The notes under the pieces are model-generated. The model was not told the origin of the DNA and did no database searches. It worked only from the letters and a program-made list of their open reading frames with translations. 64,000 bases of DNA, from sequence record OQ718158.1, one strand, 5' to 3'. The position numbers and the translations under genes were made by a program. Below, in pieces: positions 1 to 64,000 of this stretch (its first letter is position 1; each line of letters starts with the position of its first letter).

Positions 1-187
1 TTGATTGGGAATAAAAAGGTATCGACATATAAATCAGATGCTGGTATAATAGCAAATGTAATATTGATAGTGGACCCCAAGACAAAGGATGGGGATATTT
101 ACATAGTCATTTATCAAGATTCGTCGAACAAACGCGATCAGGATATTGATAAATTGAATATTCATTGTGAACTGTAAGGTATAACAA

Positions 188-571
188 ATGATAAACGATG
201 TAATGCTTTATGTATTAATTACTCCGATTCTTATTAACTCAGTAATAACTATTTCAATGGCATTATTTGGTATAGTAGCAATTGTTTATGCGGTTAGTAC
301 TGGAAAGTATACTTTAATTAGTAAGGTTGATTCATGGTTCGCATCTGATAGTGTACCATATTCAGCTAGTATGATTACGATTGGTATTCTAATCGTTGCA
401 TTTACACTGCACTGTATTGGTTTTATTAATACAAGTATTTTTTCAGTTTTTATTGGTCTATCATTATATCCATCACTTTGGTACTTGATTTATGTAATCG
501 ATGTTTGGTATAATAACTACAAGCAGTACAAAGTGAAGAAATCCATTTTATCCAAAGGAAACAAATCATGA
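188..571 (+). CDS. hypothetical membrane protein
   Basis: 127 aa, about three hydrophobic segments, basic C-terminus. Confidence 0.75.
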   Translation: MINDVMLYVLITPILINSVITISMALFGIVAIVYAVSTGKYTLISKVDSWFASDSVPYSASMITIGILIVAFTLHCIGFINTSIFSVFIGLSLYPSLWYLIYVIDVWYNNYKQYKVKKSILSKGNKS

Positions 572-918
572 AAGTAATTTTGTTTTTTGTTTGTATGATT
601 ATATGTGGTATGTCTTATGCAGAACCATTACCTGGACTAGTCTGTACTGAAGGTGATATTAAACACATTTACCAAGGTGATAGCGATGACCATACTATCG
701 TTTATATCGATGGTGAAGTGTATAATTTTGTTAAAGAACATACTGTAGGTGACATTAGTTTTACGCAGTACTCGAATGATACTGATCCCAATATGCTTGC
801 ATTTCTTCAAGTTGATGTATATGAAGAAAGTAATGGTGAACAGTATGTTAAACTTGTGATGATGCGTAAGGCAGCAAAACAGGCAACATTCGGTGGCTTG
901 TGTAAATATGAGGACTAA
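568..918 (+). CDS. hypothetical exported protein
   Basis: Sec-type signal peptide; Cys near both ends of mature part; overlaps upstream stop (ATGA). Confidence 0.75.
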   Translation: MKVILFFVCMIICGMSYAEPLPGLVCTEGDIKHIYQGDSDDHTIVYIDGEVYNFVKEHTVGDISFTQYSNDTDPNMLAFLQVDVYEESNGEQYVKLVMMRKAAKQATFGGLCKYED

Positions 919-922
919 ACAT

Positions 923-1114
923 ATGTTGATTTATCAATGTGATAACATTCGTGTTATGCAGCATCCCTACTTACAAATCTTTGATGTGCAGCAGTATATG
1001 GAAGGTGATGACCCAAGAACCTATGGTCGTAAGTATGATTACTTCACTGTAAAGCAGTGTCATAACATCAAAGAAGTACGACAATTAGTTCAAGAACTTC
1101 AAAATAAAGGTTGA
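923..1114 (+). CDS. hypothetical protein
   Basis: ATG 923 after AGGA SD; ORF-track start 893 trimmed. Confidence 0.65.
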   Translation: MLIYQCDNIRVMQHPYLQIFDVQQYMEGDDPRTYGRKYDYFTVKQCHNIKEVRQLVQELQNKG

Positions 1115-1140
1115 CTTCGGTCAACCTTTTTTGTTATAAT
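1106..1140 (+). promoter_or_regulatory. terminator/sigma70 promoter fusion cassette
   Basis: hairpin AAAGGTTGAC-TTCG-GTCAACCTTT plus T-tract; TTGACT 1111-1116, 18 bp, TG-n-TATAAT 1135-1140. Confidence 0.9.
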
Positions 1141-1169
1141 TACTTCATCAACTACTGGGGATTTTAATT

Positions 1170-1610
1170 ATGTACGTATATCGTTTTGAACTTAAATTCA
1201 GTTATATTGAACCTAACTTAGATCCAGCAAAAACAGTAGGGCCGTTCGCACGGTACTCTTCACGATACAGTACTAAAAATGGATTTGACCGTTTGTGCAT
1301 GACCACGCCTTCGCAATTCCAACCAGAACCAACTGAAGATGGAATCTATTCAATCAAACGTGGCTGGGCATTTGGCTGTCAGAGTTTGAATGATTTGTTT
1401 AAGTTCTTTACTATGGACTTGGGTAAATTACATCGTGCAGGGTTTGCTGTATCAGTATATGAAGTTCCTGATAATCATGTTGACATTGGTCGTAGTCAGG
1501 TTCAGTACTATTGTGGTAGTGCCAATCTGGTTCGTATTATGTCAGTGAGAGAAGCAAAGGATGAGTACCGCCAAAGTAAAAGAGTAATACATGAGGCTGT
1601 ATATGGATAA
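1170..1610 (+). CDS. conserved phage hypothetical protein
   Basis: 146 aa after promoter; GPF..PEP..DG..FG..S..F..GF..YEV..G.SQV pattern resembles a recurrent phage family. Confidence 0.7.
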   Translation: MYVYRFELKFSYIEPNLDPAKTVGPFARYSSRYSTKNGFDRLCMTTPSQFQPEPTEDGIYSIKRGWAFGCQSLNDLFKFFTMDLGKLHRAGFAVSVYEVPDNHVDIGRSQVQYYCGSANLVRIMSVREAKDEYRQSKRVIHEAVYG

Positions 1611-1947
1611 GACTCAAATAGAATTAAAAAAATTTGTATCGTTTTATCTACCCAATGACCCACGTTGTACACAATATGATGTTGCATATTACAATGCATT
1701 GACTACACAGTTAATGAAGAAATTCAAACAGTGTTTGACTGTATTCAATGATGATGGTAGACGTAGATATAGAATCATTCCAATGAATGATGAAAACGAT
1801 AACTACTTTGACTTTGATGTTGTTTTTCGAGCATATAATGATGATAGAATAAAATTAAATTATGAGCAAATAATGCTTGACCTCAGTGTTATCTGTGTTA
1901 TAATTACTCACATAGCCGAACTTGATGGTTTAAAAGAATGGTATTAA
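1603..1947 (+). CDS. hypothetical protein
   Basis: ATG 1603 after GAGG SD, coupled to upstream gene. Confidence 0.7.
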   Translation: MDKTQIELKKFVSFYLPNDPRCTQYDVAYYNALTTQLMKKFKQCLTVFNDDGRRRYRIIPMNDENDNYFDFDVVFRAYNDDRIKLNYEQIMLDLSVICVIITHIAELDGLKEWY

Positions 1948-1961
1948 CTTAGAGGATAATC

Positions 1962-2228
1962 ATGAAGCTTAAATTACAATACAATGGTTTTACTTTGCGT
2001 AACGACACTGAGTTTGTCAATCGTTCACCAGGTGCTGAGTTGTTTTTGCGAGAGATGAACATTCCTTTCGTCATCACTACTGTTGGTGACCGTGAAGTGC
2101 TACAATACGCAGAGCATCCAGTTATTGATGTTCCGTGGTATTCTGAGCATATGTATATGGATATGGCCCGTCGCTACGACTGTAAGTTCGTAGTTGAAGG
2201 TGATAAAATTACAGTCCAATTCAAATAA
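1962..2228 (+). CDS. hypothetical protein
   Basis: GAGG SD, operon context. Confidence 0.75.
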   Translation: MKLKLQYNGFTLRNDTEFVNRSPGAELFLREMNIPFVITTVGDREVLQYAEHPVIDVPWYSEHMYMDMARRYDCKFVVEGDKITVQFK

Positions 2229-2239
2229 GGTAACTTAAA

Positions 2240-2533
2240 ATGATCAGTACTTCAGTAAATGCAAGCATCGTGGCAGACGTAGAAATGGTTAAAGAATGTA
2301 CAGACGAAACCCTTCGCAACATGTACATCAATGATTTGATTTCAGAGTACGGAAGTCGTGGTGTTCATGAGTTTGTTCGCCTAAGCGGTGAATTGATGAA
2401 GAATCGCATTCGTATGAAGCTTAATGTGCATCCAAAAGCATGGGCGTTTACAATGAAGTACGCTGAAGATATTGTTGAGTTGCGTCGCAATGATGTGTAT
2501 AATCGTTTACACAATGGTACATTAAAGGACTAA
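2240..2533 (+). CDS. hypothetical protein
   Basis: AAGGT SD, operon context. Confidence 0.75.
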   Translation: MISTSVNASIVADVEMVKECTDETLRNMYINDLISEYGSRGVHEFVRLSGELMKNRIRMKLNVHPKAWAFTMKYAEDIVELRRNDVYNRLHNGTLKD

Positions 2534-2538
2534 ATTAT

Positions 2539-2560
2539 AGGAATCCGTAAAAGGATTCCT
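2539..2560 (+). terminator. possible intrinsic terminator
   Basis: AGGAATCC-GTAAAA-GGATTCCT hairpin; weak T-tract. Confidence 0.4.
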
Positions 2561-2583
2561 GTTCTTGTTTATAAGGTAATAAA

Positions 2584-2808
2584 ATGAAATATCTAGTACT
2601 AGTACTGCTATTCTTGAGTACTGTTGTATGTGCTAAACCAAAGTATCATGTAGTGTGTATCAACGAGATGGAAGGATATACTGAAACATATAAGAACCAT
2701 ATTGTTGAAGTTGCAGCCCAAGGTTCCTATGGGACCATCATCTTCCTTAAGAACAATGTGATTGTTCAGTACAAAAAAGATTCAAATTGTAAAGTGACTA
2801 AAAAATGA
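2584..2808 (+). CDS. hypothetical exported protein
   Basis: signal peptide MKYLVLVLLFLSTVVCA; two Cys bracket the mature domain. Confidence 0.7.
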   Translation: MKYLVLVLLFLSTVVCAKPKYHVVCINEMEGYTETYKNHIVEVAAQGSYGTIIFLKNNVIVQYKKDSNCKVTKK

Positions 2809-2878
2809 TCTAGATCAATTTTTCAGATATTCTCTGTAAATAATAGCAGTACAGAACATTATTTTACGGAGGTGTAAT

Positions 2879-3115
2879 ATGGAAACTATAATCATCATAT
2901 GTGCGTTGTTTGCATTTTTGGTAATGTGGTCACCAACATTCATTGCATATAAAATGAAAAATAAAAATGCAGAAGCAATTATGTACGTAAACTTATGTTG
3001 CATACTAACTTATGGAATACTTTTATTCTTTACTGAATTTACATTAATCCCAGTAGTAGTTTGTTCATCAATGTTTATTTGGTTGTTTCTGCTTTATGAA
3101 TCTATTAAAAAATAA
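2879..3115 (+). CDS. superinfection immunity (T4 Imm-like) membrane protein
   Basis: 78 aa, hydrophobic; SPTFIAYKMKNKN..AI.YVNL pattern recalls T4 Imm; GGAGGT SD. Confidence 0.5.
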   Translation: METIIIICALFAFLVMWSPTFIAYKMKNKNAEAIMYVNLCCILTYGILLFFTEFTLIPVVVCSSMFIWLFLLYESIKK

Positions 3116-3169
3116 AAGATATAGGGTTGGTAATATGCCATCCCTTTTACTTTATGTGGGGTTTAATTA

Positions 3170-3742
3170 ATGAATAGAAAAGGTAAGTTCAAAGTATCAA
3201 AGAAGAACAAAAGTTCTAGATTTAGACCTATAACTTTAACTTTTAAGGCTAAAGAAGAATTAACTGCACTTAGTAAAAAGATAATTTCATCTAAGATTAA
3301 AGTATCATACGTAAATTCGGTAAAATTTCAGAAGGTTAAACCACAAGACAAACTCATTTCACTTATATTTAAACGTAATGATTTTGAGATATTAGTAGAT
3401 GATTATAGAGCCTATAATGCTGGATTCATTCATGTCACTTGTAATACCGAACTAACTGAGTTGGAACATTTGACATGTATCATAAGTGTAGATAACGGTG
3501 TGGTGAAGTACAATTTTTTACATTTTACCAATATCAATAATGGAATGGGTGTACAATCCAGACCTATAGTACCTACATGTGATGTGACTAATTTAGCAAA
3601 GCTCAATGAAGAAGAATATTTTCAAGAAAGCATTGTAACTGAGCATTTAGATGCTATAATAGCAACTTACAAAGAATGCATATGGGTTTTGAATGCGATA
3701 AAGCCCAAATTGTGTTTAATGAATGTCGTTCGTGATTTATAA
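3170..3742 (+). CDS. hypothetical protein, basic N-terminus, EE.xFQxS family
   Basis: K/R-rich N-terminus; LNEEEYFQES near C-terminus, shared with 19835 and 39214. Confidence 0.7.
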   Translation: MNRKGKFKVSKKNKSSRFRPITLTFKAKEELTALSKKIISSKIKVSYVNSVKFQKVKPQDKLISLIFKRNDFEILVDDYRAYNAGFIHVTCNTELTELEHLTCIISVDNGVVKYNFLHFTNINNGMGVQSRPIVPTCDVTNLAKLNEEEYFQESIVTEHLDAIIATYKECIWVLNAIKPKLCLMNVVRDL

Positions 3743-3755
3743 CTGGAGATGTAGT

Positions 3756-4199
3756 ATGGGTTGGATTAACGTTAATAGCATTGAACTAAATGAGCAAGAC
3801 ATATTTGCCTTTGTTAATTTGGTAGAGAACATTGCTATTAAAGGTCGTCTGTTTAGTTCATCGGACGGTAAAAAATGGATCTCTCTTATGAACGACAATG
3901 GCGAGATTTATGACGTTATGCAACTACCTCATTGGGCTTATAAGAATACATCTGATGATGTGATGGCTGCTGTTATGCGTGAGTTTGAGAAGCTGCCAGG
4001 TGGTGATATTAAGAACATCGTATTCAATGCAGAACGCATGAACTACACACCAGAGCAGCTTCAACAGTTGGCAATTGCTGCCTATCAAGCTGCCATTAAG
4101 AAACCTGAATGTGTGATATTAAAGTACACACCGAACTTGAAGTTAACACTAGAAGATATGGATTCCTTTATCTTCAGTTCAGAACTTAAACAGTACTGA
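3756..4199 (+). CDS. hypothetical protein
   Basis: ATG 3756 after GGAG SD. Confidence 0.75.
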   Translation: MGWINVNSIELNEQDIFAFVNLVENIAIKGRLFSSSDGKKWISLMNDNGEIYDVMQLPHWAYKNTSDDVMAAVMREFEKLPGGDIKNIVFNAERMNYTPEQLQQLAIAAYQAAIKKPECVILKYTPNLKLTLEDMDSFIFSSELKQY

Positions 4200-4270
4200 T
4201 TTGACTTTGGAACAACCATTTCATATGTGATATAATCTTAAGTGTCTGTTGAAATAAACAGCACATGAAG

Positions 4271-4278
4271 TATAAATA
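4271..4278 (+). promoter_or_regulatory. T4-type late promoter
   Basis: exact TATAAATA about 30 bp upstream of the ORF at 4311. Confidence 0.65.
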
Positions 4279-4310
4279 TTAAAGTAATTTATCTCTTTAA
4301 GGAGTATGAA

Positions 4311-4694
4311 ATGGTTGATAAATGGAATAAGAAAGATCCATCGCATGATGTGGATATTTCTGGAATTGATAATGCACATAAGCATAAGTATCTTGATTCA
4401 CTAGGTCTACTAAAGCCTGACCAAAGTCTTGCACATGATCGTCCTTCACGCGAAAAAGCTTTCAGTTTAGAATCACTAGGCCATGAATTGAATCGTGTAT
4501 TTGAAGATCATCCAATTTATGTACGTGATATCATTGAGAAACTTAAAGTGACTCCTAAAGAGCACTTCAAGGCAACAGTACACGCAGCATTCCGTGCACT
4601 ACATGAAGCACTAAAGAAAACTCATAACCTTCGTAAGATTCATGATGATATCGTGAACTCTATTGAAGGCGAAAAACATAAGTTTAAAAAATAA
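4311..4694 (+). CDS. His-rich helical protein, putative late/internal virion protein
   Basis: AAGGAG SD; late promoter; aligns with N-terminal part of 5566..7053. Confidence 0.75.
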   Translation: MVDKWNKKDPSHDVDISGIDNAHKHKYLDSLGLLKPDQSLAHDRPSREKAFSLESLGHELNRVFEDHPIYVRDIIEKLKVTPKEHFKATVHAAFRALHEALKKTHNLRKIHDDIVNSIEGEKHKFKK

Positions 4695-4700
4695 TTAAAA

Positions 4701-4734
4701 GGGGTTGACTTCAGTCAGCCCTTTGTCGTATAAT
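4701..4734 (+). promoter_or_regulatory. terminator/sigma70 promoter fusion cassette
   Basis: GGGGTTGACTTCAGTCAGCCC hairpin; TTGACT 4705, TATAAT 4729. Confidence 0.8.
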
Positions 4735-4781
4735 ATTTTCATCAAGTGATACAAAATACAAACAACGTGAGGTATTAAATT

Positions 4782-4895
4782 ATGCAAGGTACTAAATTCA
4801 TCATCGCTGCCCTAATCGCTGCTGTTGTAGTGGGTACAGTATGTTATTCAATTGACACCTATATCAATACACCTAGTGTTGAACAAACCAAATAA
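4782..4895 (+). CDS. small single-TM protein (37 aa)
   Basis: MQGTKFIIAALIAAVVVGTVCY..., GAGGT SD; below ORF-track cutoff, translated by hand. Confidence 0.6.
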   Translation: MQGTKFIIAALIAAVVVGTVCYSIDTYINTPSVEQTK

Positions 4896-4903
4896 GGGAT
4901 ATC

Positions 4904-5167
4904 ATGGCTGAAACATTATCACTATATGCGTTAGTACTGTTATTTGTCGGATTTCTTCCCGCACTCATTACAGCCATTCGTGTTGTTAAACATGAAGCTG
5001 CATTGATTGTATGTAGTATTGGGTCGAACATTCTATTGTATTTCTTTTTGACAAACACTATTGTACTGTTCGCTTTCTTTATCATGATTCTGTGGGTACT
5101 TGTAATTCTCGGATTCTTCATTTGGTCATTGGTTGATCCTAAGAAAAAAACAGGAGAAGTGAAATGA
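4904..5167 (+). CDS. superinfection immunity (T4 Imm-like) membrane protein
   Basis: FLPALITAIR...FIWSLVDPKKK resembles T4 Imm LPWFIALMR...FIWSIAGETKK. Confidence 0.5.
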   Translation: MAETLSLYALVLLFVGFLPALITAIRVVKHEAALIVCSIGSNILLYFFLTNTIVLFAFFIMILWVLVILGFFIWSLVDPKKKTGEVK

Positions 5168-5460
5168 AATTAATTATTGTAATGATGATGTTTTTGGCTT
5201 TCCCAGTACTGGCTACTCCTAATCTGGACTGCACACTGTTGCGTTCAGATGGTGACACACTTGAAATCAACACATATGAACTCTTTGGTCCAAGTGTAGT
5301 GGAGAATGAAACCACCTACAATTTCAAAGCTATTGACTTTGAAGGTAATGTTCCAGTACTAACTACAATGACTATTGACAAAACTACTTTACTCGGACGA
5401 ATCACCACACAACGCGGAGAAAGTAAAACATTCACAGCGAAAGCTGACTGTAACTACTAA
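5164..5460 (+). CDS. hypothetical exported protein
   Basis: signal peptide ending VLA; N- and C-terminal Cys. Confidence 0.7.
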   Translation: MKLIIVMMMFLAFPVLATPNLDCTLLRSDGDTLEINTYELFGPSVVENETTYNFKAIDFEGNVPVLTTMTIDKTTLLGRITTQRGESKTFTAKADCNY

Positions 5461-5481
5461 TGGTATAGTACAGTGAAAATA

Positions 5482-5520
5482 GGGTTGACTTCGGTCAACC
5501 TTTTCTTTATACTATAAATA
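5482..5520 (+). promoter_or_regulatory. terminator plus overlapping early (TTGACT-17-TATACT) and late (TATAAATA) promoters
   Basis: hairpin GGTTGAC-TTCG-GTCAACC; TATACT 5508-5513; TATAAATA 5513-5520. Confidence 0.75.
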
Positions 5521-5565
5521 TAGTCATAGAGAATAAACAATATGAAATCTATGGAGAGAAATCAA

Positions 5566-7053
5566 ATGCCAGGTCAATTTACTGATAAAAATGGCGGGAA
5601 CATGGCAGGTCACTCTGATAAATGGAGTGAACGCAATCGTCGTCAAAATAGCTACCAAGCAGGACAGGGGTCACGTGGTTCACGTAATCAAGGGACAGGT
5701 TTAGCTGGTAAGGCAAACGCAGAAGCAGGTGAAGTTAAGAGTACTGAGAACATGACTGAGCTAGAAAAGCTACGTTATGTTAACTCATTAGGTCTTCTTA
5801 ACGCAACACAGAAACAACGCCTTGCTGATATGGAACGTGCTGAGAAAGAACAAGAAGTTCCTAAAGAAGAACCAAAACCAGAAGCTCCTAAAGCAGCTAA
5901 CCCTGTTAAAGAGTTATCTGATAACTTAGGTAAGATCTTTGCTAACAAACCACAGTTGATTCAGGGTATTGTCAAAGCACTACAGGCAGTTCCTAAAGAA
6001 GAACTCAAAGGTAAAGCACAAGCTGTACTTGATGCAATGAAAGGTAATAAGAGCACTGAACCTACTGAAGTATTCAGTACTATCATGCGTGCACTTGAAG
6101 GTACACACAAAGAAGATTCCAAAGAACCTGAACAGGGTGAAGCAAGTCTTGATGGTATTCTTAAAACTTTTGATAGTATTGGTAAAGCAGACCGTGCTAA
6201 TGCCCAGCAAGTCAAGAATGTACTGGCTAAACTTGAAAACCGTTTAGAAGGTAAAGATGATAAGGTTAAGCTCGTATCAGATGCAGTTAACAGTGCACTT
6301 AAATCTTATGTACAAGGTGAGAAAAGTCGCTTCGTAACAGCTATGGATGCTGCATTCAACACTATGAAAAAGTATGAAGCAGAACATGGTGAGAAAGTGA
6401 CACCTGATGGATATCTACTACGTAAAGATGAAGAAGGTGCAGTTGAACAGAAAGATGTTGAGCCTGAGCAAGAAGATCTACCTGATACCGTTGATATGGA
6501 TGGATACATTCATCGTCCTGAGATGGAAGAGTTTGGGTCAGATAAAGAAGGTTTTGAACATGCAATGGCAGTATATAAAGCATTAGTTAAAAATCCAGAT
6601 TATGCTAACCGTTTTGTTGACGAGTTTGATAGTGCATGGAATAACTACAAAGAGAAAGGTTATGATTTCCCTGCTGAAGCTGCATTCTTTGAACTTGGTA
6701 AACTATTAGCTAAACATGGAATTGACGTTGGTTCATCTGATTCCGAAGGTATGGAAGAAGAACATCTTGAAATGACTGATAAATCAATTCATGAACTTCA
6801 AAAGTTAATGATGTGGATATCCGAGATTGGTAAAAAAGCAGGTGCTGATAGTAAAAGTATCAACAAAAATATTAGTTGGATTAAAGATAATGTTGGTAAC
6901 AATGCTCGTAAACTTCAAAAGGCTTGGGCTGATTTAGTAAATGGTGCAGATGATGTTGACATTGAATCACCAGAAGCATATGAGTATGCACTAACTACAC
7001 TTGATAACTCATTCAAAGAGTACGACCGTGGTGTTGGAAAGGATAAAAAATAA
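5566..7053 (+). CDS. large charged helical protein, putative internal virion protein
   Basis: likely start MPGQF at 5566 (GGAGAG SD; ORF open from 5542); K/E/D-rich; early and late promoters. Confidence 0.8.
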   Translation: MPGQFTDKNGGNMAGHSDKWSERNRRQNSYQAGQGSRGSRNQGTGLAGKANAEAGEVKSTENMTELEKLRYVNSLGLLNATQKQRLADMERAEKEQEVPKEEPKPEAPKAANPVKELSDNLGKIFANKPQLIQGIVKALQAVPKEELKGKAQAVLDAMKGNKSTEPTEVFSTIMRALEGTHKEDSKEPEQGEASLDGILKTFDSIGKADRANAQQVKNVLAKLENRLEGKDDKVKLVSDAVNSALKSYVQGEKSRFVTAMDAAFNTMKKYEAEHGEKVTPDGYLLRKDEEGAVEQKDVEPEQEDLPDTVDMDGYIHRPEMEEFGSDKEGFEHAMAVYKALVKNPDYANRFVDEFDSAWNNYKEKGYDFPAEAAFFELGKLLAKHGIDVGSSDSEGMEEEHLEMTDKSIHELQKLMMWISEIGKKAGADSKSINKNISWIKDNVGNNARKLQKAWADLVNGADDVDIESPEAYEYALTTLDNSFKEYDRGVGKDKK

Positions 7054-7060
7054 ACATTTA

Positions 7061-7095
7061 AAAGGTTGACTTCGGTCAACCTTTTTTTGTAAATA
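7061..7095 (+). terminator. intrinsic terminator followed by TAAATA
   Basis: AAAGGTTGAC-TTCG-GTCAACCTTTTTTT then GTAAATA. Confidence 0.85.
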
Positions 7096-7124
7096 TTGTA
7101 GAGGGTTTTATAAGAGGTAATGCA

Positions 7125-7376
7125 ATGTTTAAATATGTTTTATTTTCACTTGTATTGTTTACTGATATAGTTTATAGTACTGAATACCAGTGCTCCATTG
7201 CTAGACAGGAGTTTAGAAACGGTGAGTTCTATACCAAGTCTTACACTAGAGGATTGGTACATGACAATAATAAAACTATAGGGTTCAATGCATTTGATAA
7301 CAAAGATCGATATACGTCTGGAATACTATCTGAACGTAAGTCTGATATACTAGGTATCGAGCGTGAATTCCGGTGA
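7125..7376 (+). CDS. hypothetical exported protein (possibly N-half of a split gene)
   Basis: signal-like N-terminus, GAGGT SD. Confidence 0.6.
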   Translation: MFKYVLFSLVLFTDIVYSTEYQCSIARQEFRNGEFYTKSYTRGLVHDNNKTIGFNAFDNKDRYTSGILSERKSDILGIEREFR

Positions 7377-7737
7377 CACGGTTGCAATGTGTAATGATAT
7401 TGAGAGTACTAAGAAAGTATATACTAATGGTGAAAATACTTTTAGATTCCACAATCTTACTACTAATGAAAGTTTATACTTCTACAACTGTAAAGAGTTC
7501 ATTAAACCTGTGGATAACTCATGTGATATGCCGGAGCCAAAAGCTGCTGTATGTGAGGAACCACAATCCAAAGCTGACAAAGATTCAAAAGATAAGAAAG
7601 ACAAAGCTGACAAATCGGATAAAAAAGAAAACAAAAAGAAAGCTAAAGATGATAAAGATAAAAAGTCCCCTAAGCCAAATCCATTTGAAAAGCCAAAGAA
7701 TGAAAAGCCAAAACCAGACATGACATGTAAAATATAA
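7363..7737 (+). CDS. hypothetical protein with K/D low-complexity tail
   Basis: GTG start overlapping upstream ORF; KADKDSKDKK tail. Confidence 0.55.
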   Translation: MNSGDTVAMCNDIESTKKVYTNGENTFRFHNLTTNESLYFYNCKEFIKPVDNSCDMPEPKAAVCEEPQSKADKDSKDKKDKADKSDKKENKKKAKDDKDKKSPKPNPFEKPKNEKPKPDMTCKI

Positions 7738-7743
7738 AAGAAA

Positions 7744-7777
7744 AGGGTTGACTTCGGTCGGCCTTTTTTGCTATAAT
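7744..7777 (+). promoter_or_regulatory. terminator/sigma70 promoter fusion cassette
   Basis: GGGTTGACTTCGGTCGGCC hairpin; TTGACT 7748, TGCTATAAT 7769-7777. Confidence 0.85.
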
Positions 7778-7803
7778 CATTTCATCAACTACTGGAGGCA
7801 AAC

Positions 7804-8217
7804 ATGTTAAAAGTTATTTTCCGTTCTATCAGTTCATTACTTCTTATGATTAGTTCAGTTTGTTATGCAAATGAAGTATCTGATTTATTTGAGAAGAATT
7901 ACCCAACTGCACAAGAGATGGGTGTTTTAAAATGCAAGCTAACTTCGTACAACATCATCGGCAGTAAACTTGTACTAGAACATGAACGTAGTACACCAAT
8001 CCCTCTAGTAGAAGAAGGTAGTACCTTTAGCTTCAAGTACGGGGTGAACGTAACATCTGGTGTAATGAACAATGTTGATGCAGAGACTGGTTCAACATGG
8101 AGTACTAGCGGTAAAGATGTGTTTCATCGTATGCGTGAAAATGGTAAACTGAAGTACGTATATGAAAGTTCATTCATGAAACGTGTATTCATTATAAAAA
8201 ATTGTGTACCAGCATAA
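7804..8217 (+). CDS. hypothetical exported protein
   Basis: signal peptide ending CYA; GGAGG SD. Confidence 0.75.
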   Translation: MLKVIFRSISSLLLMISSVCYANEVSDLFEKNYPTAQEMGVLKCKLTSYNIIGSKLVLEHERSTPIPLVEEGSTFSFKYGVNVTSGVMNNVDAETGSTWSTSGKDVFHRMRENGKLKYVYESSFMKRVFIIKNCVPA

Positions 8218-8228
8218 GGAACAACATC

Positions 8229-8504
8229 ATGCGTTCATTTGAAAACTTAATAGGTAAACTTCGCTTACAAGAAATTGAAGCTGATGTGAAGGAATTATCT
8301 GAAACTAAGAGTTACATTCATTTAGATGAACTGTTTATTAAGTACGGTGAGATTGGTTTTAAGTCATTATTTGTGTTTGTCATGAAGGTGCATAGTTTAA
8401 AGTACTTTGATTTGAGTTCAAAAGACGGACAACCAAATCTGTATTACATGTATTATCTTAAGAACATAGACGAAGCTAATACATTATTCTTAGAATATAT
8501 GTAG
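8229..8504 (+). CDS. hypothetical protein
   Basis: ATG 8229 after AAGGA. Confidence 0.65.
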   Translation: MRSFENLIGKLRLQEIEADVKELSETKSYIHLDELFIKYGEIGFKSLFVFVMKVHSLKYFDLSSKDGQPNLYYMYYLKNIDEANTLFLEYM

Positions 8505-8513
8505 GGGTAAAAA

Positions 8514-8852
8514 ATGGAACAACATTTTGAATTAATTAATAAGGTATCATTTTATGTAGTATCATTAATTTGGGTGTATTACATGTTTTGTTACATTATT
8601 GCATTCTTCCGATACACGACCTTGTATCAACGCATATACTACGATGCACCCATTTCATTTATGATGTTCTGTGCATGTACGTGGGGGATAATTGAAGCAC
8701 TGGTATGTGGATATAGTACTGACGAATTAAATCTCGTATCGGGGTTGACATTACTAACAATTGCCATTATGATAGCTACTGTTCCGATATTTTTGCTCTT
8801 TAAACTGCTTCATCGTATCGATGAGTGGCGTAATAAAATCCCTGAAAAGTAA
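8514..8852 (+). CDS. 3-TM membrane protein, paralog family
   Basis: three TM segments, ends WRNKIPEK. Confidence 0.8.
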   Translation: MEQHFELINKVSFYVVSLIWVYYMFCYIIAFFRYTTLYQRIYYDAPISFMMFCACTWGIIEALVCGYSTDELNLVSGLTLLTIAIMIATVPIFLLFKLLHRIDEWRNKIPEK

Positions 8853-8855
8853 GGA

Positions 8856-9203
8856 TTGATAATGATTTTTTACACTAATGCGTTTGCTTATGCCGTTGCA
8901 TCAATCTACATTGTGTACTTCTTATTTGGTGGAGTACTGTACTTCTTTAAGTACAAAACATTGTTTAACCGAATGTATCCAAATCACCCAATTGTAGTAG
9001 TACTTTTGATGATTTCTGTTGCTCACATCATTGTAGAAACAATAATGGGTATCAGTGCAGTACATTACAGTCTAGGTACTATTGTGATTATTACTATGAT
9101 CATCGCATACATTTTAGTAATGGGTTCTGGTTTATTTGGGAATGTAGCAATGAAATTGTATAATCGAATTAAAACCTTACGTGATAATCTACCGGAGCGT
9201 TGA
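8856..9203 (+). CDS. 3-TM membrane protein, paralog family
   Basis: YFFKYKTLFNRMYP, ends LRDNLPER. Confidence 0.8.
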   Translation: MIMIFYTNAFAYAVASIYIVYFLFGGVLYFFKYKTLFNRMYPNHPIVVVLLMISVAHIIVETIMGISAVHYSLGTIVIITMIIAYILVMGSGLFGNVAMKLYNRIKTLRDNLPER

Positions 9204-9204
9204 G

Positions 9205-9549
9205 ATGTATAATTTAAATTTAATCTCATATATCATAACAACACTGTTTACTTTCTATACCTTTGTCGGTATACTCCTACTGTACTTTAAATTTTATAAA
9301 CTCTTTGACCGTTTATATCCATCATTGGAACATGAATTCTTATTGGTGATGTACATCTGTTTAACGTGTATGTCTACATTTTTCACTGTATTTGATGGTA
9401 TCATCGGTATTAAAGCTGAAGATCCAAATGGCAGTACACTTGTTGCCTTTATCCTGGTAGGATTCTTCGGTACTTATATCACTTTCATTTCAACATGGTC
9501 TGTGGTTGATTATCTCATTAGATTACGAGATAAAATGCCAAATCGATAG
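9205..9549 (+). CDS. 3-TM membrane protein, paralog family
   Basis: YFKFYKLFDRLYP, ends LRDKMPNR; start trimmed to ATG 9205. Confidence 0.8.
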   Translation: MYNLNLISYIITTLFTFYTFVGILLLYFKFYKLFDRLYPSLEHEFLLVMYICLTCMSTFFTVFDGIIGIKAEDPNGSTLVAFILVGFFGTYITFISTWSVVDYLIRLRDKMPNR

Positions 9550-9558
9550 GGGATTGCT

Positions 9559-9816
9559 ATGTTTGCATTGCGTAATAAAAATACAAAAGAGATTCTATGT
9601 ATCTCAACAGTATGGGATTGTGCAGGAAGTGAAATGATCCTCGAAGAAGGTTCAGGTGATTGTGTTTATGTTGTTCATGATCGTCGCGAACTGGAATCAT
9701 TACTTGATGAATTTAATGCTGGTGGAAATCCTAAAAGTACTCAATTCCCTGAGATCAGGAATCCAGCACCACCAGGCTCTTATGAAATTCTACAACTGTG
9801 GGAGATGGATAAGTAA
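9559..9816 (+). CDS. hypothetical protein (paralog of 11679)
   Basis: MFALRNK..YVVHD..L..LL..PE..YEILQL pattern shared with 11679. Confidence 0.7.
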   Translation: MFALRNKNTKEILCISTVWDCAGSEMILEEGSGDCVYVVHDRRELESLLDEFNAGGNPKSTQFPEIRNPAPPGSYEILQLWEMDK

Positions 9817-10196
9817 TGCGACAAATGCACAAAGTAACCGAGCTAAACAAGCGTCTGATTAAACAATCAATGTTTGAGGATAAAGAGTCTTACTATAACT
9901 TCAAACGTGCTGTAGAGGCTGCTATCCACATTCAGAAGCTTAAAGATAGTGGATGTATTATTCTCGAAAATGGTTCTGACGTTGTTACTGATGACTTCAG
10001 TGTAGCGTTTGATGTTTCACCTGATGGTTCGCTATCAATGCCACGCTTAGGGACTGGTGACATGACTGTGTGGGTAGGTTTCACTATGGGGAATGTACCA
10101 GGCACGGTGTATGTAGATGATGCTGAGTTGAAAGAAAGCTTTAAAAACTTATCGCATCTTGAACCACAATACGCACATGAAATGAATTTATTTTGA
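9816..10196 (+). CDS. hypothetical protein
   Basis: coupled TAATG junction. Confidence 0.7.
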   Translation: MRQMHKVTELNKRLIKQSMFEDKESYYNFKRAVEAAIHIQKLKDSGCIILENGSDVVTDDFSVAFDVSPDGSLSMPRLGTGDMTVWVGFTMGNVPGTVYVDDAELKESFKNLSHLEPQYAHEMNLF

Positions 10197-10197
10197 G

Positions 10198-10225
10198 TTG
10201 ACAAACTCATTCAGTACTGTATAAT
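10198..10225 (+). promoter_or_regulatory. sigma70 early promoter
   Basis: TTGACA-16-TATAAT with AGTACT abutting the -10; leader hairpin GGGGATG/CATCCCC follows. Confidence 0.8.
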
Positions 10226-10272
10226 GTTTATCAAGGGGATGAACTTCTCATCCCCACAATCGAGGAATTGTC

Positions 10273-10827
10273 ATGATTACTTTTAAGAAAACTGCTAACC
10301 ACATCCATGAGATCTACATTAACGGTCACAAAGCTGGCCTTCTTCGTTTACTCGCCCATCATCCGAATATTACCGTATCTGATAATGAACCTAAAGATTG
10401 GCGTGTATTTTTCTTTGGAAAGTACAGTGATTTTCAAGTATCAAACCTGAAGAACATTCGTTCAGTATGCACGTTAACTGAAATTAAAGAAAAGTTAACC
10501 AAAGCATTGAAAACTAATCCAGATGGTGTTCTTCCACCTGATAACTTTGTAGAGAAAGGATATGCCTTAGCTCATTTCAAAGATGGTACTATTCAATCTA
10601 TCAGTACTGAATATGAATATCAATGGACTGAGTACTTCACTTATGGATCGCGTAATACATTGATGGCTTCACGTAGTAAATTGGAAGAAGTACTGACTCG
10701 TATGAATGAACGCGAGCGTCAGTACTATGACAAACCAGAAATGTGGAGTTCAACTTACATTGACCGTATTGACTATGTTATTATGACTCCAATCTTTGAC
10801 ACTGCTTACTATGATTCTTTGAAATAA
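10273..10827 (+). CDS. hypothetical protein
   Basis: GAGGA SD, 184 aa. Confidence 0.75.
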   Translation: MITFKKTANHIHEIYINGHKAGLLRLLAHHPNITVSDNEPKDWRVFFFGKYSDFQVSNLKNIRSVCTLTEIKEKLTKALKTNPDGVLPPDNFVEKGYALAHFKDGTIQSISTEYEYQWTEYFTYGSRNTLMASRSKLEEVLTRMNERERQYYDKPEMWSSTYIDRIDYVIMTPIFDTAYYDSLK

Positions 10828-10838
10828 GGATAACTTAT

Positions 10839-11015
10839 ATGAAACTACGTACTCGTAATCGACTGATGGATGCACTGTACCATGAACAGCTTTCACTGAA
10901 TGAAGTGAAGCGACAGTTAATGTACACATATCTGTTACCCGCTCGCATTGCAAAACAACGTGCTAAAGAATTGCTGAAAGAAGCAATCGAGTACTGGGAA
11001 TCTGATTCGTACTAA
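10839..11015 (+). CDS. hypothetical protein (58 aa)
   Basis: AAGGA SD; MKLRTRNRLMDALY..., translated by hand. Confidence 0.6.
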   Translation: MKLRTRNRLMDALYHEQLSLNEVKRQLMYTYLLPARIAKQRAKELLKEAIEYWESDSY

Positions 11016-11043
11016 TTGTCACGTTAATTAAGTGAGGCGATAA

Positions 11044-11295
11044 ATGAAAATTTTATTAGTTCTAATACTACTAATTGTTTTACCATTTACGTTAGTATCC
11101 CCTGAACTTGCATGGAATGTGTTTGTGTACTTACTATGTACTATGATAGTAAATGGTATCTTGTTCTTAGTTCTATTCATAAATGGAATAGGACACGGTG
11201 GAGGATGGACCAGTACTGCTGATATTGTACATAAAACCACTATGTCTTTATTTGTAGTGTGGAATTTATTCTGGACTTGGTTTGTGTTCTTCTAA
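11044..11295 (+). CDS. hypothetical membrane protein
   Basis: three hydrophobic segments, GAGG SD. Confidence 0.7.
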   Translation: MKILLVLILLIVLPFTLVSPELAWNVFVYLLCTMIVNGILFLVLFINGIGHGGGWTSTADIVHKTTMSLFVVWNLFWTWFVFF

Positions 11296-11305
11296 TTAAA
11301 AAAAT

Positions 11306-11677
11306 ATGAATATAGATTTGAAAGGTGCAACACGAACTGTCATACTCATTGGGGAATATGCTATCAAGATTCCAACCTTTAAAAGTTGGAAGCTATTCTT
11401 AACAGGGATGATAGCTAACCTCAATGAACGTTCGTGGATGCAGTACTCCAAGCGTAGTGATACTGGTATCTGTCCTACTTTGTGGTCATCATGTACTGGA
11501 CTAGTAACTGTACAGAAACGTTGTAAGCCAGTACAACATAGGGGTTTATTTTGGGTGGAGTTGTGTGCTTTAGCATTGAATTCAGAGTTAAGTACTGACT
11601 TCTTCTATTCAGATGCGAAGCCAGAAAACTTTGGGTATCTGTGTGGTAAGTTGGTTAAACTTGATTATGGAGATTAA
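11306..11677 (+). CDS. minimal protein-kinase-like protein
   Basis: KGATRTV (Gly loop), YAIKIP (VAIK Lys), SDAKPENFG (catalytic loop), KLDYG (DFG-like). Confidence 0.7.
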   Translation: MNIDLKGATRTVILIGEYAIKIPTFKSWKLFLTGMIANLNERSWMQYSKRSDTGICPTLWSSCTGLVTVQKRCKPVQHRGLFWVELCALALNSELSTDFFYSDAKPENFGYLCGKLVKLDYGD

Positions 11678-11678
11678 T

Positions 11679-11948
11679 ATGTACGCATTGTATAATAAAG
11701 AAAAGAAACGATTTGCTAAGGTTGAAATTTCGATTGATACATTTGATATGTTGGAGTACTGTATTGTAACGGACTTATATGCTAACTTGTATTACGTTCT
11801 TGATGACGTATCAGTACTGCAACGATTGCTTGAGAATTCCAAAAGTCAATGCCAGGGCATCCATGATGGTTCATCTTATGAAACACCTGAGTGTTCCTAC
11901 GGCTATCTGGACGGGTATGAGATTGTGAAGTTGGGGATTGTTGAATAA
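11679..11948 (+). CDS. hypothetical protein (paralog of 9559)
   Basis: ATG 11679 after GGAG; MYALYNK...YEIVKL. Confidence 0.7.
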   Translation: MYALYNKEKKRFAKVEISIDTFDMLEYCIVTDLYANLYYVLDDVSVLQRLLENSKSQCQGIHDGSSYETPECSYGYLDGYEIVKLGIVE

Positions 11949-11960
11949 ATGGATTAAACA

Positions 11961-12374: not shown

Positions 12375-12400
12375 CTTCGGTCAGCCCTTTTTGCTATAAT
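12367..12400 (+). promoter_or_regulatory. terminator/sigma70 promoter fusion cassette
   Basis: AGGGTTGACTTCGGTCAGCCCTTTTTGCTATAAT. Confidence 0.9.
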
Positions 12401-12428
12401 CATTTCATCGAAACGAGAGGATGAATAC

Positions 12429-12944: not shown

Positions 12945-12982
12945 AGGTAAGGGTTAACTTCGGTCACACAAAGGAACATAAC

Positions 12983-13177: not shown

Positions 13178-13283
13178 TTGATGTAGTAGGTGCTACACCA
13201 AAGTATTTGGATATTTGAGATATAAACATTGACACCTGTTCTATCTTTCTGTATTATGTACATCACCAAATGAGGAATACCAC

Positions 13284-13837: not shown

Positions 13838-13844
13838 AAAATAA

Positions 13845-15249: not shown

Positions 15250-15256
15250 AACAAAA

Positions 15257-50844: not shown

Positions 50845-50933
50845 AAATATTATCACAGTACTATTGACATAGTTTGATAGTACTGGCATAATAGATTTTA
50901 TCAAGACAACATATTAATTTAAGGAATACAAAA

Positions 50934-52214: not shown

Positions 52215-52361
52215 ATGAAAGCATCAAAAAAGAGTACTAACAAGAAAGCACGTTCAACCTTAGATGGGGTATTCCCTTTACGTTTCGTTGATGAAGTGGT
52301 TTCCTACCCGCCTGGCCTTACTCCTGAGATGGTAGAAAGTTTGCGTAAATCTAAAAAATAG
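52215..52361 (+). CDS. small early protein (48 aa)
   Basis: promoter cassette, AAGGA SD; translated by hand. Confidence 0.6.
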   Translation: MKASKKSTNKKARSTLDGVFPLRFVDEVVSYPPGLTPEMVESLRKSKK

Positions 52362-52442
52362 TACTTGCAATTAGTTTTTAGTACTGTATAATGTTTTACA
52401 TGAAGGGGAGAAATGATTCTCCCCAATAACAGGAGAAACAAA

Positions 52443-53686: not shown

Positions 53687-53769
53687 AAATATTATCACAG
53701 TACTATTGACATAGTTTGATAGTACTGACATAATAACTTTTATCAACTACACTACTAAGGAATTAAAAA

Positions 53770-55081: not shown

Positions 55082-55144
55082 AAAGTATTGACAGTACTAT
55101 CCAGTAGTGTATAATGTTTTATATCTTAACTGAGGATAGAAATC

Positions 55145-55501
55145 ATGGGAATACAACATATCACGCGTACTACTGACAATGGCGAGATCACTGGCTATCA
55201 AGTACAGGGCAAAGTAGCACAATTGCAGTACTGGTTTGTTAAACGTGGAATCATTGCACCGGATCTTGATTATGACCGTGTAGCGTTTATTGATTCTCTT
55301 TATGTTGATCCTGATAGTCGGGGGAATGGTGAAGGTAACGAATTAATGAATGCCTTTATTGATGCCGCCGATGATTCAGATTGTATCATCTTAGAATGCG
55401 ATACGGGAGAAGATAACGCCTTTAATCTTAAAGAATGGTATGAAGGTTTCGGATTCGAGGTACTGATCGATAGTGAATATCCTATCATGATTTTATCATA
55501 G
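55145..55501 (+). CDS. GNAT family acetyltransferase
   Basis: IDSLYVDPDSRGNGEG..LM (motif A); L..WYEGFGF. Confidence 0.88.
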   Translation: MGIQHITRTTDNGEITGYQVQGKVAQLQYWFVKRGIIAPDLDYDRVAFIDSLYVDPDSRGNGEGNELMNAFIDAADDSDCIILECDTGEDNAFNLKEWYEGFGFEVLIDSEYPIMILS

Positions 55502-55580
55502 TACTTGCATTTAGTTTTCAGTACTGTATAATAGTTTACATGAAGGGGAGAATAGTTCTCCCCACTACAAGGAAAGACAA

Positions 55581-62211: not shown

Positions 62212-62301
62212 AAACTATTTGACAGTACTAACCAGTAATGTATAATGTTTTACATAGAGCGGGGGAATAGTTCTCCCGCCAATAGTTTGGAGTTAAACAT
62301 T

Positions 62302-62502
62302 ATGTCTATCGCTATCGCCCTGGTTGAAGTACTGAAAGAAGCTAAAGCCAACCTTATCGATGTACAGATTAAGGAATTGCAAAACGGCTTAATCGGCTGT
62401 ACTTGTACCGCTGGTGGAGCGGCAGACTATCGAGAACACGAATCACTCGAATCACTGGTTCGGTATCTTACCATGATCGTTGATGATTGGAGAATCATCT
62501 AA
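62302..62502 (+). CDS. early hypothetical protein
   Basis: true start MSIA, GGAG SD. Confidence 0.68.
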   Translation: MSIAIALVEVLKEAKANLIDVQIKELQNGLIGCTCTAGGAADYREHESLESLVRYLTMIVDDWRII

Positions 62503-62746
62503 CAAAAAAGAATAAAAAAGGGATTGACTCCGGTCAGTCCCTTTGCTATTATATACGCATAGACAAAAACTAGCCCACAGGGTGCATAAGTGTATCCAAA
62601 ATATATAGTTAATAACGGTGAGTAACTATCTGCTGGTGGAGTGAAAACTATTAATAAAAAAGTATTGACAAAGTATATCAGTACTGCAATAATGTATCTC
62701 GTAGGGCGGCAATGGTGCGACGGCCCACAAAGTTAGGAGCTTCAAA

Positions 62747-63079
62747 ATGACTACTTCAATCGCTATCGTTAAAGCTTTCATCCGTACTAATGTTTCCTCT
62801 GTATTCATCGACGGCCTCGACCGTAACGTAGAATACTCAATCATTATCGCACAAACGGCAAACGGTTCTCGGTACATCCTGAATGATAGTGAAGCAAATC
62901 ACTACTACTTCACTAAAGCCACTGGCTTTAAACGCATCGATGCTGATGTAGTATACGCTAAGATGAATAAGCTGGTAGATAAGATTAACGCTAAAGGTAC
63001 TATAGATTTACAGTACTGGACCGAAACCGATCCAGAATATGGATCTCACCGCTACCTGAATCCAGGTATTAAAATGTAA
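62747..63079 (+). CDS. early hypothetical protein
   Basis: AGGAG SD. Confidence 0.72.
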   Translation: MTTSIAIVKAFIRTNVSSVFIDGLDRNVEYSIIIAQTANGSRYILNDSEANHYYFTKATGFKRIDADVVYAKMNKLVDKINAKGTIDLQYWTETDPEYGSHRYLNPGIKM

Positions 63080-63168
63080 AAAGTACTTGCATAGTACTTA
63101 GATTCATGTATAATGTTTTACATAGAGAGGGGGAAATGGTTCTCCCTCCTAAATTAAGGAGTTTTATC

Positions 63169-63570
63169 ATGACCTTCTCAATCACTTCCTTCGCTGACGT
63201 TTTAGTACTGGCTCGGACTTTTGGTAAAGATGCACTGGAGTACGCTGTAAGTAATGGCACTATCCAACCGGAACAGTGCCGCATCATTGGAAACTGCAAA
63301 CGTTGGGCGGTATCCAATACTATTGCACTGGAAAACTTCAACGATGGCAACAATGAATATTCTGTTGATGCAGTATTCGAAGCCGTAGACCTGGGCGGTA
63401 TCTATAACACTAACCTGAATGATGTGCGTATCGTTCGCACGGGGTTCGGTGCTTATGATGTATCTATCCGTGAAGCTATGGACAATGGATACATTAGCAA
63501 GGACTTACTTGCTCACATCATGCAGCTATGGACGGAACGTAACGAAGCACGCACTATCTTAGGGCTGTAA
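63169..63570 (+). CDS. early hypothetical protein
   Basis: true start MTFS, AAGGAG SD. Confidence 0.72.
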   Translation: MTFSITSFADVLVLARTFGKDALEYAVSNGTIQPEQCRIIGNCKRWAVSNTIALENFNDGNNEYSVDAVFEAVDLGGIYNTNLNDVRIVRTGFGAYDVSIREAMDNGYISKDLLAHIMQLWTERNEARTILGL

Positions 63571-63594
63571 GCGTTACACATCACTAAACATCAT

Positions 63595-63614
63595 AGGCCG
63601 CTCTCTAGCGGCCT
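63595..63614 (+). terminator. hairpin, possible terminator or processing site
   Basis: AGGCCGC-TCTCTA-GCGGCCT, short T-tract. Confidence 0.45.
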
Positions 63615-63638
63615 TAACTATATCAGGAGGGCATACAT

Positions 63639-63848
63639 ATGTTCTATACAGTATATAGCGTTATAGGCACTATTGCAGGCGTACATGATAACGTCGATAG
63701 TGCTATGCGTACAGTACTGCAACAGGTTCCACTTAAGCCTAAGACCATTAAGCAGATGACAGCACGACTAACCAGGGCGACGGCTGGCGTGGAAGTATGG
63801 CAGGACTATGGGGATACACAGATAATCGTAAGCGTAACGAAGGATTAA
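63639..63848 (+). CDS. hypothetical protein
   Basis: AGGAGG SD. Confidence 0.65.
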   Translation: MFYTVYSVIGTIAGVHDNVDSAMRTVLQQVPLKPKTIKQMTARLTRATAGVEVWQDYGDTQIIVSVTKD

Positions 63849-64000
63849 TGCGTAAAAGGATTTAGTACTGAATCATAAAAAAGTCAAGGTATTTTTAAAC
63901 TTCAGCGTTAAAAAAATGCATAGGTAATCCCTTGACTTTTATGAATAAAAAGGGATTGGACTATGGCAAAATGCGTAGGGGGCTAAAGGGCGGGTAACCT

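Follow-up and report, generated by a model that had tools for sequence, protein, structure and literature searches.

Enrichment of the palindrome AGTACT in enterobacterial RaK2-like jumbo phages and its placement at early promoters

HIP1 (GCGATCGC), a palindrome of cyanobacteria, occurs in genome-wide excess, both within genes in all reading frames and between them, and is conserved beyond the neutral rate; its reader and purpose are uncertain. Uptake sequences (USS in Haemophilus, the uptake signal sequence, and DUS in Neisseria, the DNA uptake sequence) occur at a density near one per kilobase (kb), in about 1,000 copies or more, set own DNA apart from foreign DNA and often form terminators as inverted pairs. 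Chi (GCTGGTGG) is an over-represented 'self' word for a DNA-processing machine, asymmetric, strand-oriented and read single-stranded by RecBCD. Loss of short palindromes is a well-known way in which phages escape restriction. Some phages also have abundant proteins that bind throughout their genomes: phi29 p6 and SPO1 TF1 do so with a preference for the ends or the terminal redundancy and repress early promoters, p6 reading the bendability of DNA and TF1 hydroxymethyluracil DNA. Here we analyse the hexamer AGTACT in a stretch of 64,000 nucleotides (the window), identical at 100% to positions 314,574–378,573 of the record of Escherichia phage vB_Ec-M-J (OQ718158.1), a jumbo phage of the 121Q/PBECO4 type in the genus Asteriusvirus. 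The window is the final 64 kb of this 378,573-bp genome and includes its right terminal repeat. AGTACT is strongly enriched in it. The explanation that we tentatively favour is that the word is bound by a symmetric protein, probably encoded by the phage, which thereby labels phage DNA and turns early promoters off.

AGTACT resembles HIP1 in being a short palindrome in genome-wide excess, at least about ten-fold over composition-aware nulls, with copies in all reading frames and between genes, and in being shared by relatives and conserved beyond the neutral rate. It differs in having six bases rather than eight, in belonging to a phage clade rather than to cells, in having so far no plausible matching methyltransferase, and in taking fixed positions at promoters. 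With uptake sequences it shares a copy number of about 1,000 and the use of inverted pairs as terminators (compare GCC-AGTACT-TG-AGTACT-GGC); uptake sequences, however, are asymmetric, 9–12 bases long and tied to a competence receptor, and nothing in the case of AGTACT suggests uptake. Unlike Chi, AGTACT is symmetric, and no matching nuclease is known for it. The closest match for how such a system might work is offered by p6 and TF1, although neither reads an exact palindrome. AGTACT belongs in kind with HIP1, uptake sequences and Chi, set apart by its phage clade, its six-base length and its fixed promoter positions; a comparison with HIP1 and uptake sequences, already drawn in an earlier note on this DNA, is apt. 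Literature searches aimed at prior reports returned no paper describing AGTACT enrichment or testing AGTACT sites.

In the window, AGTACT is the most over-represented hexamer (z = 56), with 288 copies against 21.6 expected from base composition, 22.4 from a first-order and 51.8 from a second-order Markov model; the fourth-order expectation is 245, because the pentamers AGTAC and GTACT are likewise enriched. The strong enrichment claimed in the earlier note is thus borne out, and although the GC content that it assumed (about 33%) is corrected to 36.2%, its expected rate of 0.3–0.4 per kb still holds (about 0.35 per kb). Copies in annotated genes (161; 3.18 per kb) fall in all three frames (75/34/52), as the note had said, and non-coding DNA is denser still (124 copies, 9.3 per kb). 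The coding copies far exceed the 52.3 ± 6.6 obtained by synonymous-codon shuffling within genes (z = 16.5) and the 26.0 ± 4.9 obtained by codon permutation (z = 27.7). Among the words of the form NGTACN in the window, the one flanked by A and T alone stands out, with 288 copies compared to at most 59 for the others; T comes next after AGTAC in 288 of 392 instances (73%), and C after CAGTA in 161 of 245. No enrichment is seen in the window for the permuted words ACTAGT, TCATGA, ATGACT and AGTCAT, which lie at or below expectation. Neither codon usage and GTAC content nor a general excess of permuted words, the two grounds on which the earlier note was prepared to abandon its claim, therefore accounts for the signal.

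Locally, the three closely packed copies that the note had placed in 2595–2622 are present (Table 1), and a cluster that it had put at about 11 copies in 37170–38030 is real but holds ten sites (37174–38025). The word is nearly absent from the two homing endonuclease genes, again as described there; over four HNH genes, these two and two elsewhere in the genome, we counted 4 copies in 3552 bp against 9.8 expected (P = 0.03). A survey of all six-base palindromes showed that 25 of 64 are wholly absent from the window, mostly GC-rich ones and GGTACC and CGTACG among them. This loss is the usual pattern of restriction avoidance, to which AGTACT stands in sharp contrast.

The enrichment extends along the genome and into related phages (genome-wide numbers are pattern counts per locus). 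We counted 1,125 copies in the whole vB_Ec-M-J record and 983 (2.75 per kb) when the second terminal repeat is left out; densities are 1.9–2.9 per kb in the middle and late regions, and the late-gene block of large structural genes has 106 copies compared to 18.5 in shuffles. In 121Q we found 218 copies in 46.8 kb, in the Klebsiella phage RaK2 119 against 12 expected, again the top hexamer, in the Cronobacter phage GAP32 114 against 14, and in the Pectobacterium phage CBB 118 against 16 in late genes together with 155 in a 24-kb terminal region. That the enrichment merely follows from cassette repetition, codon usage or the content of GTAC is hardly credible in this light. Many of the non-coding copies do sit in paralogous promoter and terminator cassettes and are hence non-independent, a problem from which the coding signal is free; the coding copies alone reach z = 16–28 against codon-aware nulls, the late-gene block and four other genomes are enriched too, and the other NGTACN words are not.

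Among uncultivated viruses, 80 loci in IMG/VR were found with the capsid protein, and those of at least 9 kb were analysed. All ten loci at 90–92% capsid identity were enriched, 3–7 fold, and one at 72% held 14 copies compared to 4.6 expected. At 64–69% capsid identity the analysed loci showed no enrichment apart from a weak excess in two (9 vs 3.2 and 16 vs 5.6); AGTACT was never their leading palindrome, and no other palindrome reached a comparable enrichment. The Salicola phage SCTP-2 was mildly enriched (20 vs 8.2), and there was no enrichment in the Pseudomonas phage PA5oct (3 vs 14.3) or in T4 (4 vs 9.4, low but not significantly so). The Justusliebigvirus Escherichia phage PHB05 avoids AGTACT completely, with none in positions 1–50000 against 15.1 expected (P = 3e-7), even though GTAC occurs there 126 times. 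A 50-kb sample of E. coli K-12 contained 3 copies (0.06 per kb), so that the contrast between phage, at about 3 per kb, and host amounts to 35–100 fold. All enriched phages with a recorded host infect Enterobacterales, and the enrichment follows one clade, the enterobacterial RaK2-like jumbo phages (Asteriusvirus, Alcyoneusvirus and Mimasvirus).

The sites are also maintained. Compared with 121Q (89% identity), full conservation is seen in 72% of coding AGTACT copies but in 54% of other coding hexamers; the non-coding values are 86% and 66%. Across 45 orthologue pairs shared with RaK2 at 57.5% amino-acid identity, 27.9% of AGTACT copies occupy the same alignment column compared to 13.2% for other hexamers, and where the amino acids are conserved the word is kept in 60% against 32.5%; most positions therefore differ between the two phages while the density is unchanged. 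Between vB_Ec-M-J and BF17, with 121Q as outgroup, we counted 12 losses and 12 gains, eight of the gains being clean and four of these eight requiring 2–4 base changes. Under neutrality, with 595 one-base neighbours able to gain the word and 288 six-base sites able to lose it, losses should outnumber gains about 8.7 to 1 (P = 1e-6 for all events, 5e-4 for the clean set), with the reservation that the gain count could be raised by mosaic ancestry and by conversion among paralogous cassettes. AGTACT is thus held by selection or biased conversion and not by passive inheritance.

The second of these possibilities leads to an account with no functional reader at all, in which sequence is driven towards AGTACT by biased mutation or repair, for instance through very-short-patch repair or repeat conversion. 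The equality of gains and losses agrees with it, several recent gains of 2–4 simultaneous base changes could reflect templated conversion, and the recently acquired HNH genes are poorer in the word. Nevertheless, we consider such a bias most unlikely to be the explanation, since one-base neighbours show no drain in any of their nine classes (ratios mostly 1.2–2.5), no Vsr-type nuclease was found among the annotated nucleases, and symmetric flanks together with a promoter placement shared with CBB are hard to obtain from bias alone. The sole neighbour class that is low in all three genomes, AGGACT/AGTCCT, stands at about half to four-fifths of expectation, which is no drain. A very-short-patch repair sink is accordingly weakened, there being no depleted neighbour that is converted into AGTACT.

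The unit extends beyond the hexamer. In the four phages examined, C is favoured and G avoided at position -1, and G is favoured and C avoided at +1. Alignment of half-sites revealed T(-4) T(-3) n C(-1) before AGT, alike in coding and non-coding copies, giving a 14-bp palindrome, TTnC-AGTACT-GnAA. Beyond the preferred flank bases, the sites of the four phages show no general complementarity. Because the full palindrome alone is enriched and its flanks are symmetric, AGTACT is read as a complete duplex palindrome with two-fold symmetry, and the symmetric flanks fit a two-fold symmetric protein on duplex DNA, unlike a hairpin or single-strand reader. A hairpin or RNA-structure reading is disfavoured, there being only specific base preferences outside the core, as is a half-site or primase reading, since CAGTA and AGTAC are enriched solely as parts of the full palindrome.

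This symmetry also bears on the idea of a distributed signal for DNA transactions, for instance a primase start, a helicase-loading site or a Chi-like guard, working in either orientation, against exonucleases on a linear genome. Such a signal would suit one site per 350–470 bp everywhere, a density that is highest at the genome ends, positions that turn over while density stays, and a spacing slightly more even than random (coefficient of variation 0.83, 0.80 and 0.86 in three genomes against 0.99). We regard it as very unlikely: half-sites are unenriched, so that a single-strand reader would have to need all six bases, the fixed promoter positions are left unexplained, and T4 and PA5oct, which have related replication genes, are unenriched.

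The same six bases form the core of the SlmA site GTGAGTACTCAC, a palindrome read by a dimeric helix-turn-helix protein that requires G1, T2, A4 and G5 (PMC3020112), with GTR as the flank preceding AGT. The phage avoids these flanks: the SlmA-type flank GAGTACTC occurs in 0 of the 288 window sites, 1 of 288 matches at least 10 of the 12 positions of the SlmA site, and G is the rarest base at -1. SlmA has, moreover, about 50 sites per chromosome compared to about 1,000 per phage, and we rejected AGTACT as a SlmA site because the phage flanks are opposite to those that SlmA requires. More generally, an enterobacterial host DNA-binding protein might read AGTACT, the phage copies serving to recruit it or soak it up. 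This is quite unlikely in our judgement, even though the recorded hosts of enriched phages are all Enterobacterales, the Pseudomonas relative PA5oct is unenriched, the SlmA core is the same word and an AGTACT-carrying early cassette is found in an unrelated coliphage as well. The SlmA flanks speak against it, phage ancestry explains the phyletic pattern equally well, and we know of no other host factor with an AGTACT site, although we made no search for one.

The strongest pointer to function is position at promoters. From 37.1 kb to the end of the window, short early genes carry one sigma-70-type promoter each, and those of the terminal repeat (42476–64000) are annotated again at record positions 1–21525. 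Of the 56 sigma-70-like promoters in the non-coding DNA of the window, 33 contain AGTACT: it starts 7–8 bases before the -10 hexamer in 19 of them (AGTACTgTATAAT), 27 bases before it in 13 (aaAGTACTTGCAA, overlapping the first T of the -35) and 30–31 bases before it in 4. Where a promoter has two sites, their centres lie 20–22 bp apart, about two helical turns. The terminal repeat of CBB, which matches the window in short stretches only (65–75% identity), has the same layout, aaaAGTACT-TTGACA...gAGTACTtTATAAT, with starts peaking 7–8 and 27–29 bases before the -10. As for an operator, positions relative to the -35 and -10 are thus fixed in both vB_Ec-M-J and CBB, and the recurrence of the layout in a second genus is the best evidence for a promoter role. 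The published description of CBB gives three promoter motifs, none containing GTAC. One promoter-terminator family, GGGTTGACTTCGGTCAACCC-T5-GCTATAAT, with the promoter motif GGGTTGACT...GCTATAAT, is free of AGTACT and has its -35 hexamer inside the terminator hairpin; its members lie in window positions 1115–15318 and at 52858, 56516, 59791 and 62547. The claim that AGTACT abuts the -35 or -10 of most early promoters therefore stands as to placement, which extends to CBB, but 'most' is too strong given 33 of 56 promoters and a site-free family.

Terminators are the other recurrent location, as the earlier note had recognised. In the RCC1 array (18500–37500), 17 of 21 terminator-like hairpins have stems of the form (G)CC-AGTAC...GTACT-GG(C), and the 21 hairpins compare with 8.3 in shuffles.

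Table 1. Position of AGTACT sites and associated features in the window (window coordinates)
Feature	Position	Strand	Details
AGTACT, 288 copies	1–64000		161 in genes (all three frames), 124 non-coding, 3 on gene edges
Three AGTACT inside gene EcMJ_534	2595–2622	+	sites 2595, 2601, 2617
Promoter with single site before -10, outside early region	10213–10225	+	upstream of EcMJ_552
HNH endonuclease gene	11961–12374	+	0 AGTACT in 414 bp
HNH endonuclease gene	14134–15249	+	1 AGTACT in 1116 bp
Two-way terminator between convergent genes	18602–18628		AATCC-AGTACT-ATAAT-AGTACT-GGATT
RCC1-like paralogue array, 15 members	18633–36194	-	coding AGTACT density 2.06 per kb; spacers hold AGTACT terminators
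Terminator GCC-AGTACT-TG-AGTACT-GGC, then T run	24091–24110	-	two sites form the stem
Terminator of the GCC-AGTACT-TG-AGTACT-GGC family	33820–33843	-	sites 33825, 33833
Early region just inside right repeat	37113–42475	+	42 AGTACT, 7.8 per kb
Right copy of 21,525-bp direct terminal repeat, early region of short genes	42476–64000		142 AGTACT, 6.6 per kb
Promoter TTGACA-N10-AGTACTgTATAAT	42866–42878	+	single site before -10
Early promoter, two sites	47673–47705	+	47673 overlaps first T of -35 TTGCAA; 47693, then G, then TATAAT (47700)
Early promoter, two sites	48458–48490	+	sites 48458, 48478; layout as at 47673
Promoter cacAGTACTaTTGACA-N9-AGTACTggCATAAT	50563–50598	+	sites 50563, 50585; cassette copies 50857–50892, 53699–53734
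Early promoter, two sites	52360–52392	+	sites 52360, 52380

Candidates for a reader begin with the methyltransferases. The genome encodes a Dam-family enzyme (PF05869) and a 269-residue C5 methyltransferase (record 280881–281690). The latter is conserved in every enriched genus (121Q 95%, CBB 75%, GAP32 74%, RaK2 61%), has a short recognition domain, and aligns over its full length with the catalytic domains of DNMT3A/3B, its closest solved relatives. In RaK2 DNA, bisulfite treatment is reported to reveal CpG methylation, and cleavage to be confined to enzymes unaffected by Dam, Dcm, CpG or EcoKI methylation (PMC3622015). Ten enzymes, ScaI not among them, gave the predicted cleavage of DNA from the Asteriusvirus fEgEco12 (PMC13070987), so that bulk hypermodification is absent. 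PHB05 has a 50%-identical C5 homologue and a second small annotated methyltransferase, yet no AGTACT. Given the enzyme family, the DNMT3-like size and the bisulfite report on RaK2, the two phage methyltransferases probably have targets other than AGTACT (GATC-type and CpG). On these grounds, and despite its conservation in the clade, we consider the C5 enzyme an unlikely reader.

It is consequently unlikely, in our view, that AGTACT is the target of a phage methyltransferase, serving a methyl-dependent function or a process tied to the enzyme, as proposed for HIP1, with promoter methylation switching early genes. The retention of the C5 enzyme in every enriched genus and the presence of a Dam-family enzyme would fit; about 1,000 ScaI-type sites would need protection from AGTACT-cutting enzymes, and PHB05 avoids the word (T4 is low as well, not significantly). 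Yet AGTACT contains no CpG, which is what is reported to be methylated in RaK2, the C5 enzyme is DNMT3-sized with its short recognition domain, the second enzyme belongs to the phage Dam family, and PHB05 combines a C5 homologue and a small methyltransferase with zero AGTACT. In addition, AGTATT and AATACT, the products of 5-methylcytosine deamination, are undepleted (ratio 1.4–1.7), and methylation by itself gives no reason for sites to accumulate.

We return to the explanation that we tentatively favour, a symmetric DNA-binding protein. Because AGTACT is enriched and maintained, forms a palindromic unit and keeps its place at promoters, we infer that the reader would be a dimeric, sequence-specific DNA-binding protein, most likely phage-encoded, that would act like a viral nucleoid protein or a global regulator at about 1,000 sites per genome. 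It would be predicted to bind a TTTCAGTACTGAA duplex better than a scrambled one. The sites would tag phage DNA densely along the genome, and protein bound just upstream of the -35 and between the spacer and the -10, on the same helix face, would block RNA polymerase; exclusion of the polymerase at early promoters would silence the early genes. Extra copies could be carried at little cost in terminator stems and promoter flanks, as with Neisseria uptake sequences. Genome marking and promoter control, whose coupling the earlier note had proposed, could thus be joined in one protein.

Several points weigh against this proposal, besides the possible inflation of the gain count. A protein bound 2–3 times per kb within genes could hinder transcription and replication; the argument for early shut-off is one of position; fixed positions within one genome partly reflect the common descent of paralogous cassettes; and biased gene conversion would equally yield conserved-looking sites and gains equal to losses. 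The searches for a reader belong here too. Pfam searches with the 108 window proteins tested and with annotated regulator candidates elsewhere in the genome detected no helix-turn-helix, nuclease or third methyltransferase family. Annotated regulators, nucleases and neighbours of the sigma-factor gene included no reader family (Pfam, PHROGs), and sequence searches against solved structures (PDB) with two candidates likewise returned no DNA-binding family; no regulator of the kind that an operator implies was identified among the 108 window proteins or the annotated candidates. Hence the idea, put forward in the earlier note, of a protein or modifying enzyme that recognises AGTACT holds in that the signal is real and read as a palindrome, while no recogniser was found, and the genome search that it called for yielded two methyltransferases, both probably aimed elsewhere, and no DNA-binding family among the window proteins and annotated candidates searched.

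A related possibility, which we consider possible but doubtful, is that AGTACT is a phage 'self' tag, a viral counterpart of Chi and uptake sequences, with the same reader doubling as an off switch for early promoters. With about 1,000 marks that work in either orientation, a machine encoded by the phage would be able to distinguish a 350-kb phage genome from host DNA, in which the word is 35–100 times rarer; such a machine might be a protective coat, a nuclease guard, a packaging factor or a transcription factor.

A jumbo-phage clade that holds one palindrome at 13 times expectation implies a genome-wide system of protein-DNA recognition. Its reader, once found, could explain the timing of early genes in phages whose genes are mostly of unknown function, as well as how these phages distinguish or protect their own DNA. 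E. coli K-12 and 121Q-type phages offer a tractable model for why highly iterated palindromes such as HIP1 exist; the K-12 strain MG1655 is the host given in the records of vB_Eco_slurp01 and Sharanji. AGTACT is also a simple metagenome marker for this clade.

Other features of the window were noted alongside. Its first 18.6 kb consist of densely packed small genes, with two HNH endonucleases, a DenV-type glycosylase and a clamp-loader subunit. On the minus strand, at 18633–37112, a Kelch-repeat protein stands beside the 15 tandem RCC1-like beta-propeller paralogues, most of which have their own terminator and promoter cassette and whose copy numbers differ in BF17 and 121Q. A 761-bp gap of this array is occupied by an unannotated reading frame of 216 residues (19835–20485, plus strand); it has no Pfam match, and a gene is annotated at the matching position in BF17.

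In the early region, one of the 64 proteins encoded in 37215–63848 matches a ParE-like toxin domain (E = 6e-11), and a DksA/TraR zinc-finger protein is found among the terminal-repeat genes. Stretches annotated as intergenic between 40230 and 41800 hold a repeated, partly decayed family of small genes of about 60 residues (ATGAATAA...AAAGAATACTAC...), whose copies are probably unannotated genes or pseudogenes. Early cassettes at 45032–45252, 45629–45923 and 55110–55567, which comprise a GNAT acetyltransferase gene, small genes and a AAAAGTACTTGCAA promoter, are 82–90% identical at the nucleotide level to the 146-kb Shigella phage SF1-1 and to phages of the rV5/Phapecoctavirus type; in the SF1-1 locus, 7 of 8 AGTACT copies fall within the shared 1.1 kb (locus positions 1501–2569). 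These GNAT/AAAAGTACTTGCAA cassettes look like a recent exchange between unrelated coliphages. Finally, short tandem repeats lie near the annotated repeat boundary, at 42326–42396, 42540–42573 and 43294–43392, with GTAATCA-type units, ATCAAAAGTA repeated 3.4 times and the 8-base CTAGACGG repeated about 12 times. These repeats may serve as signals in packaging or replication.

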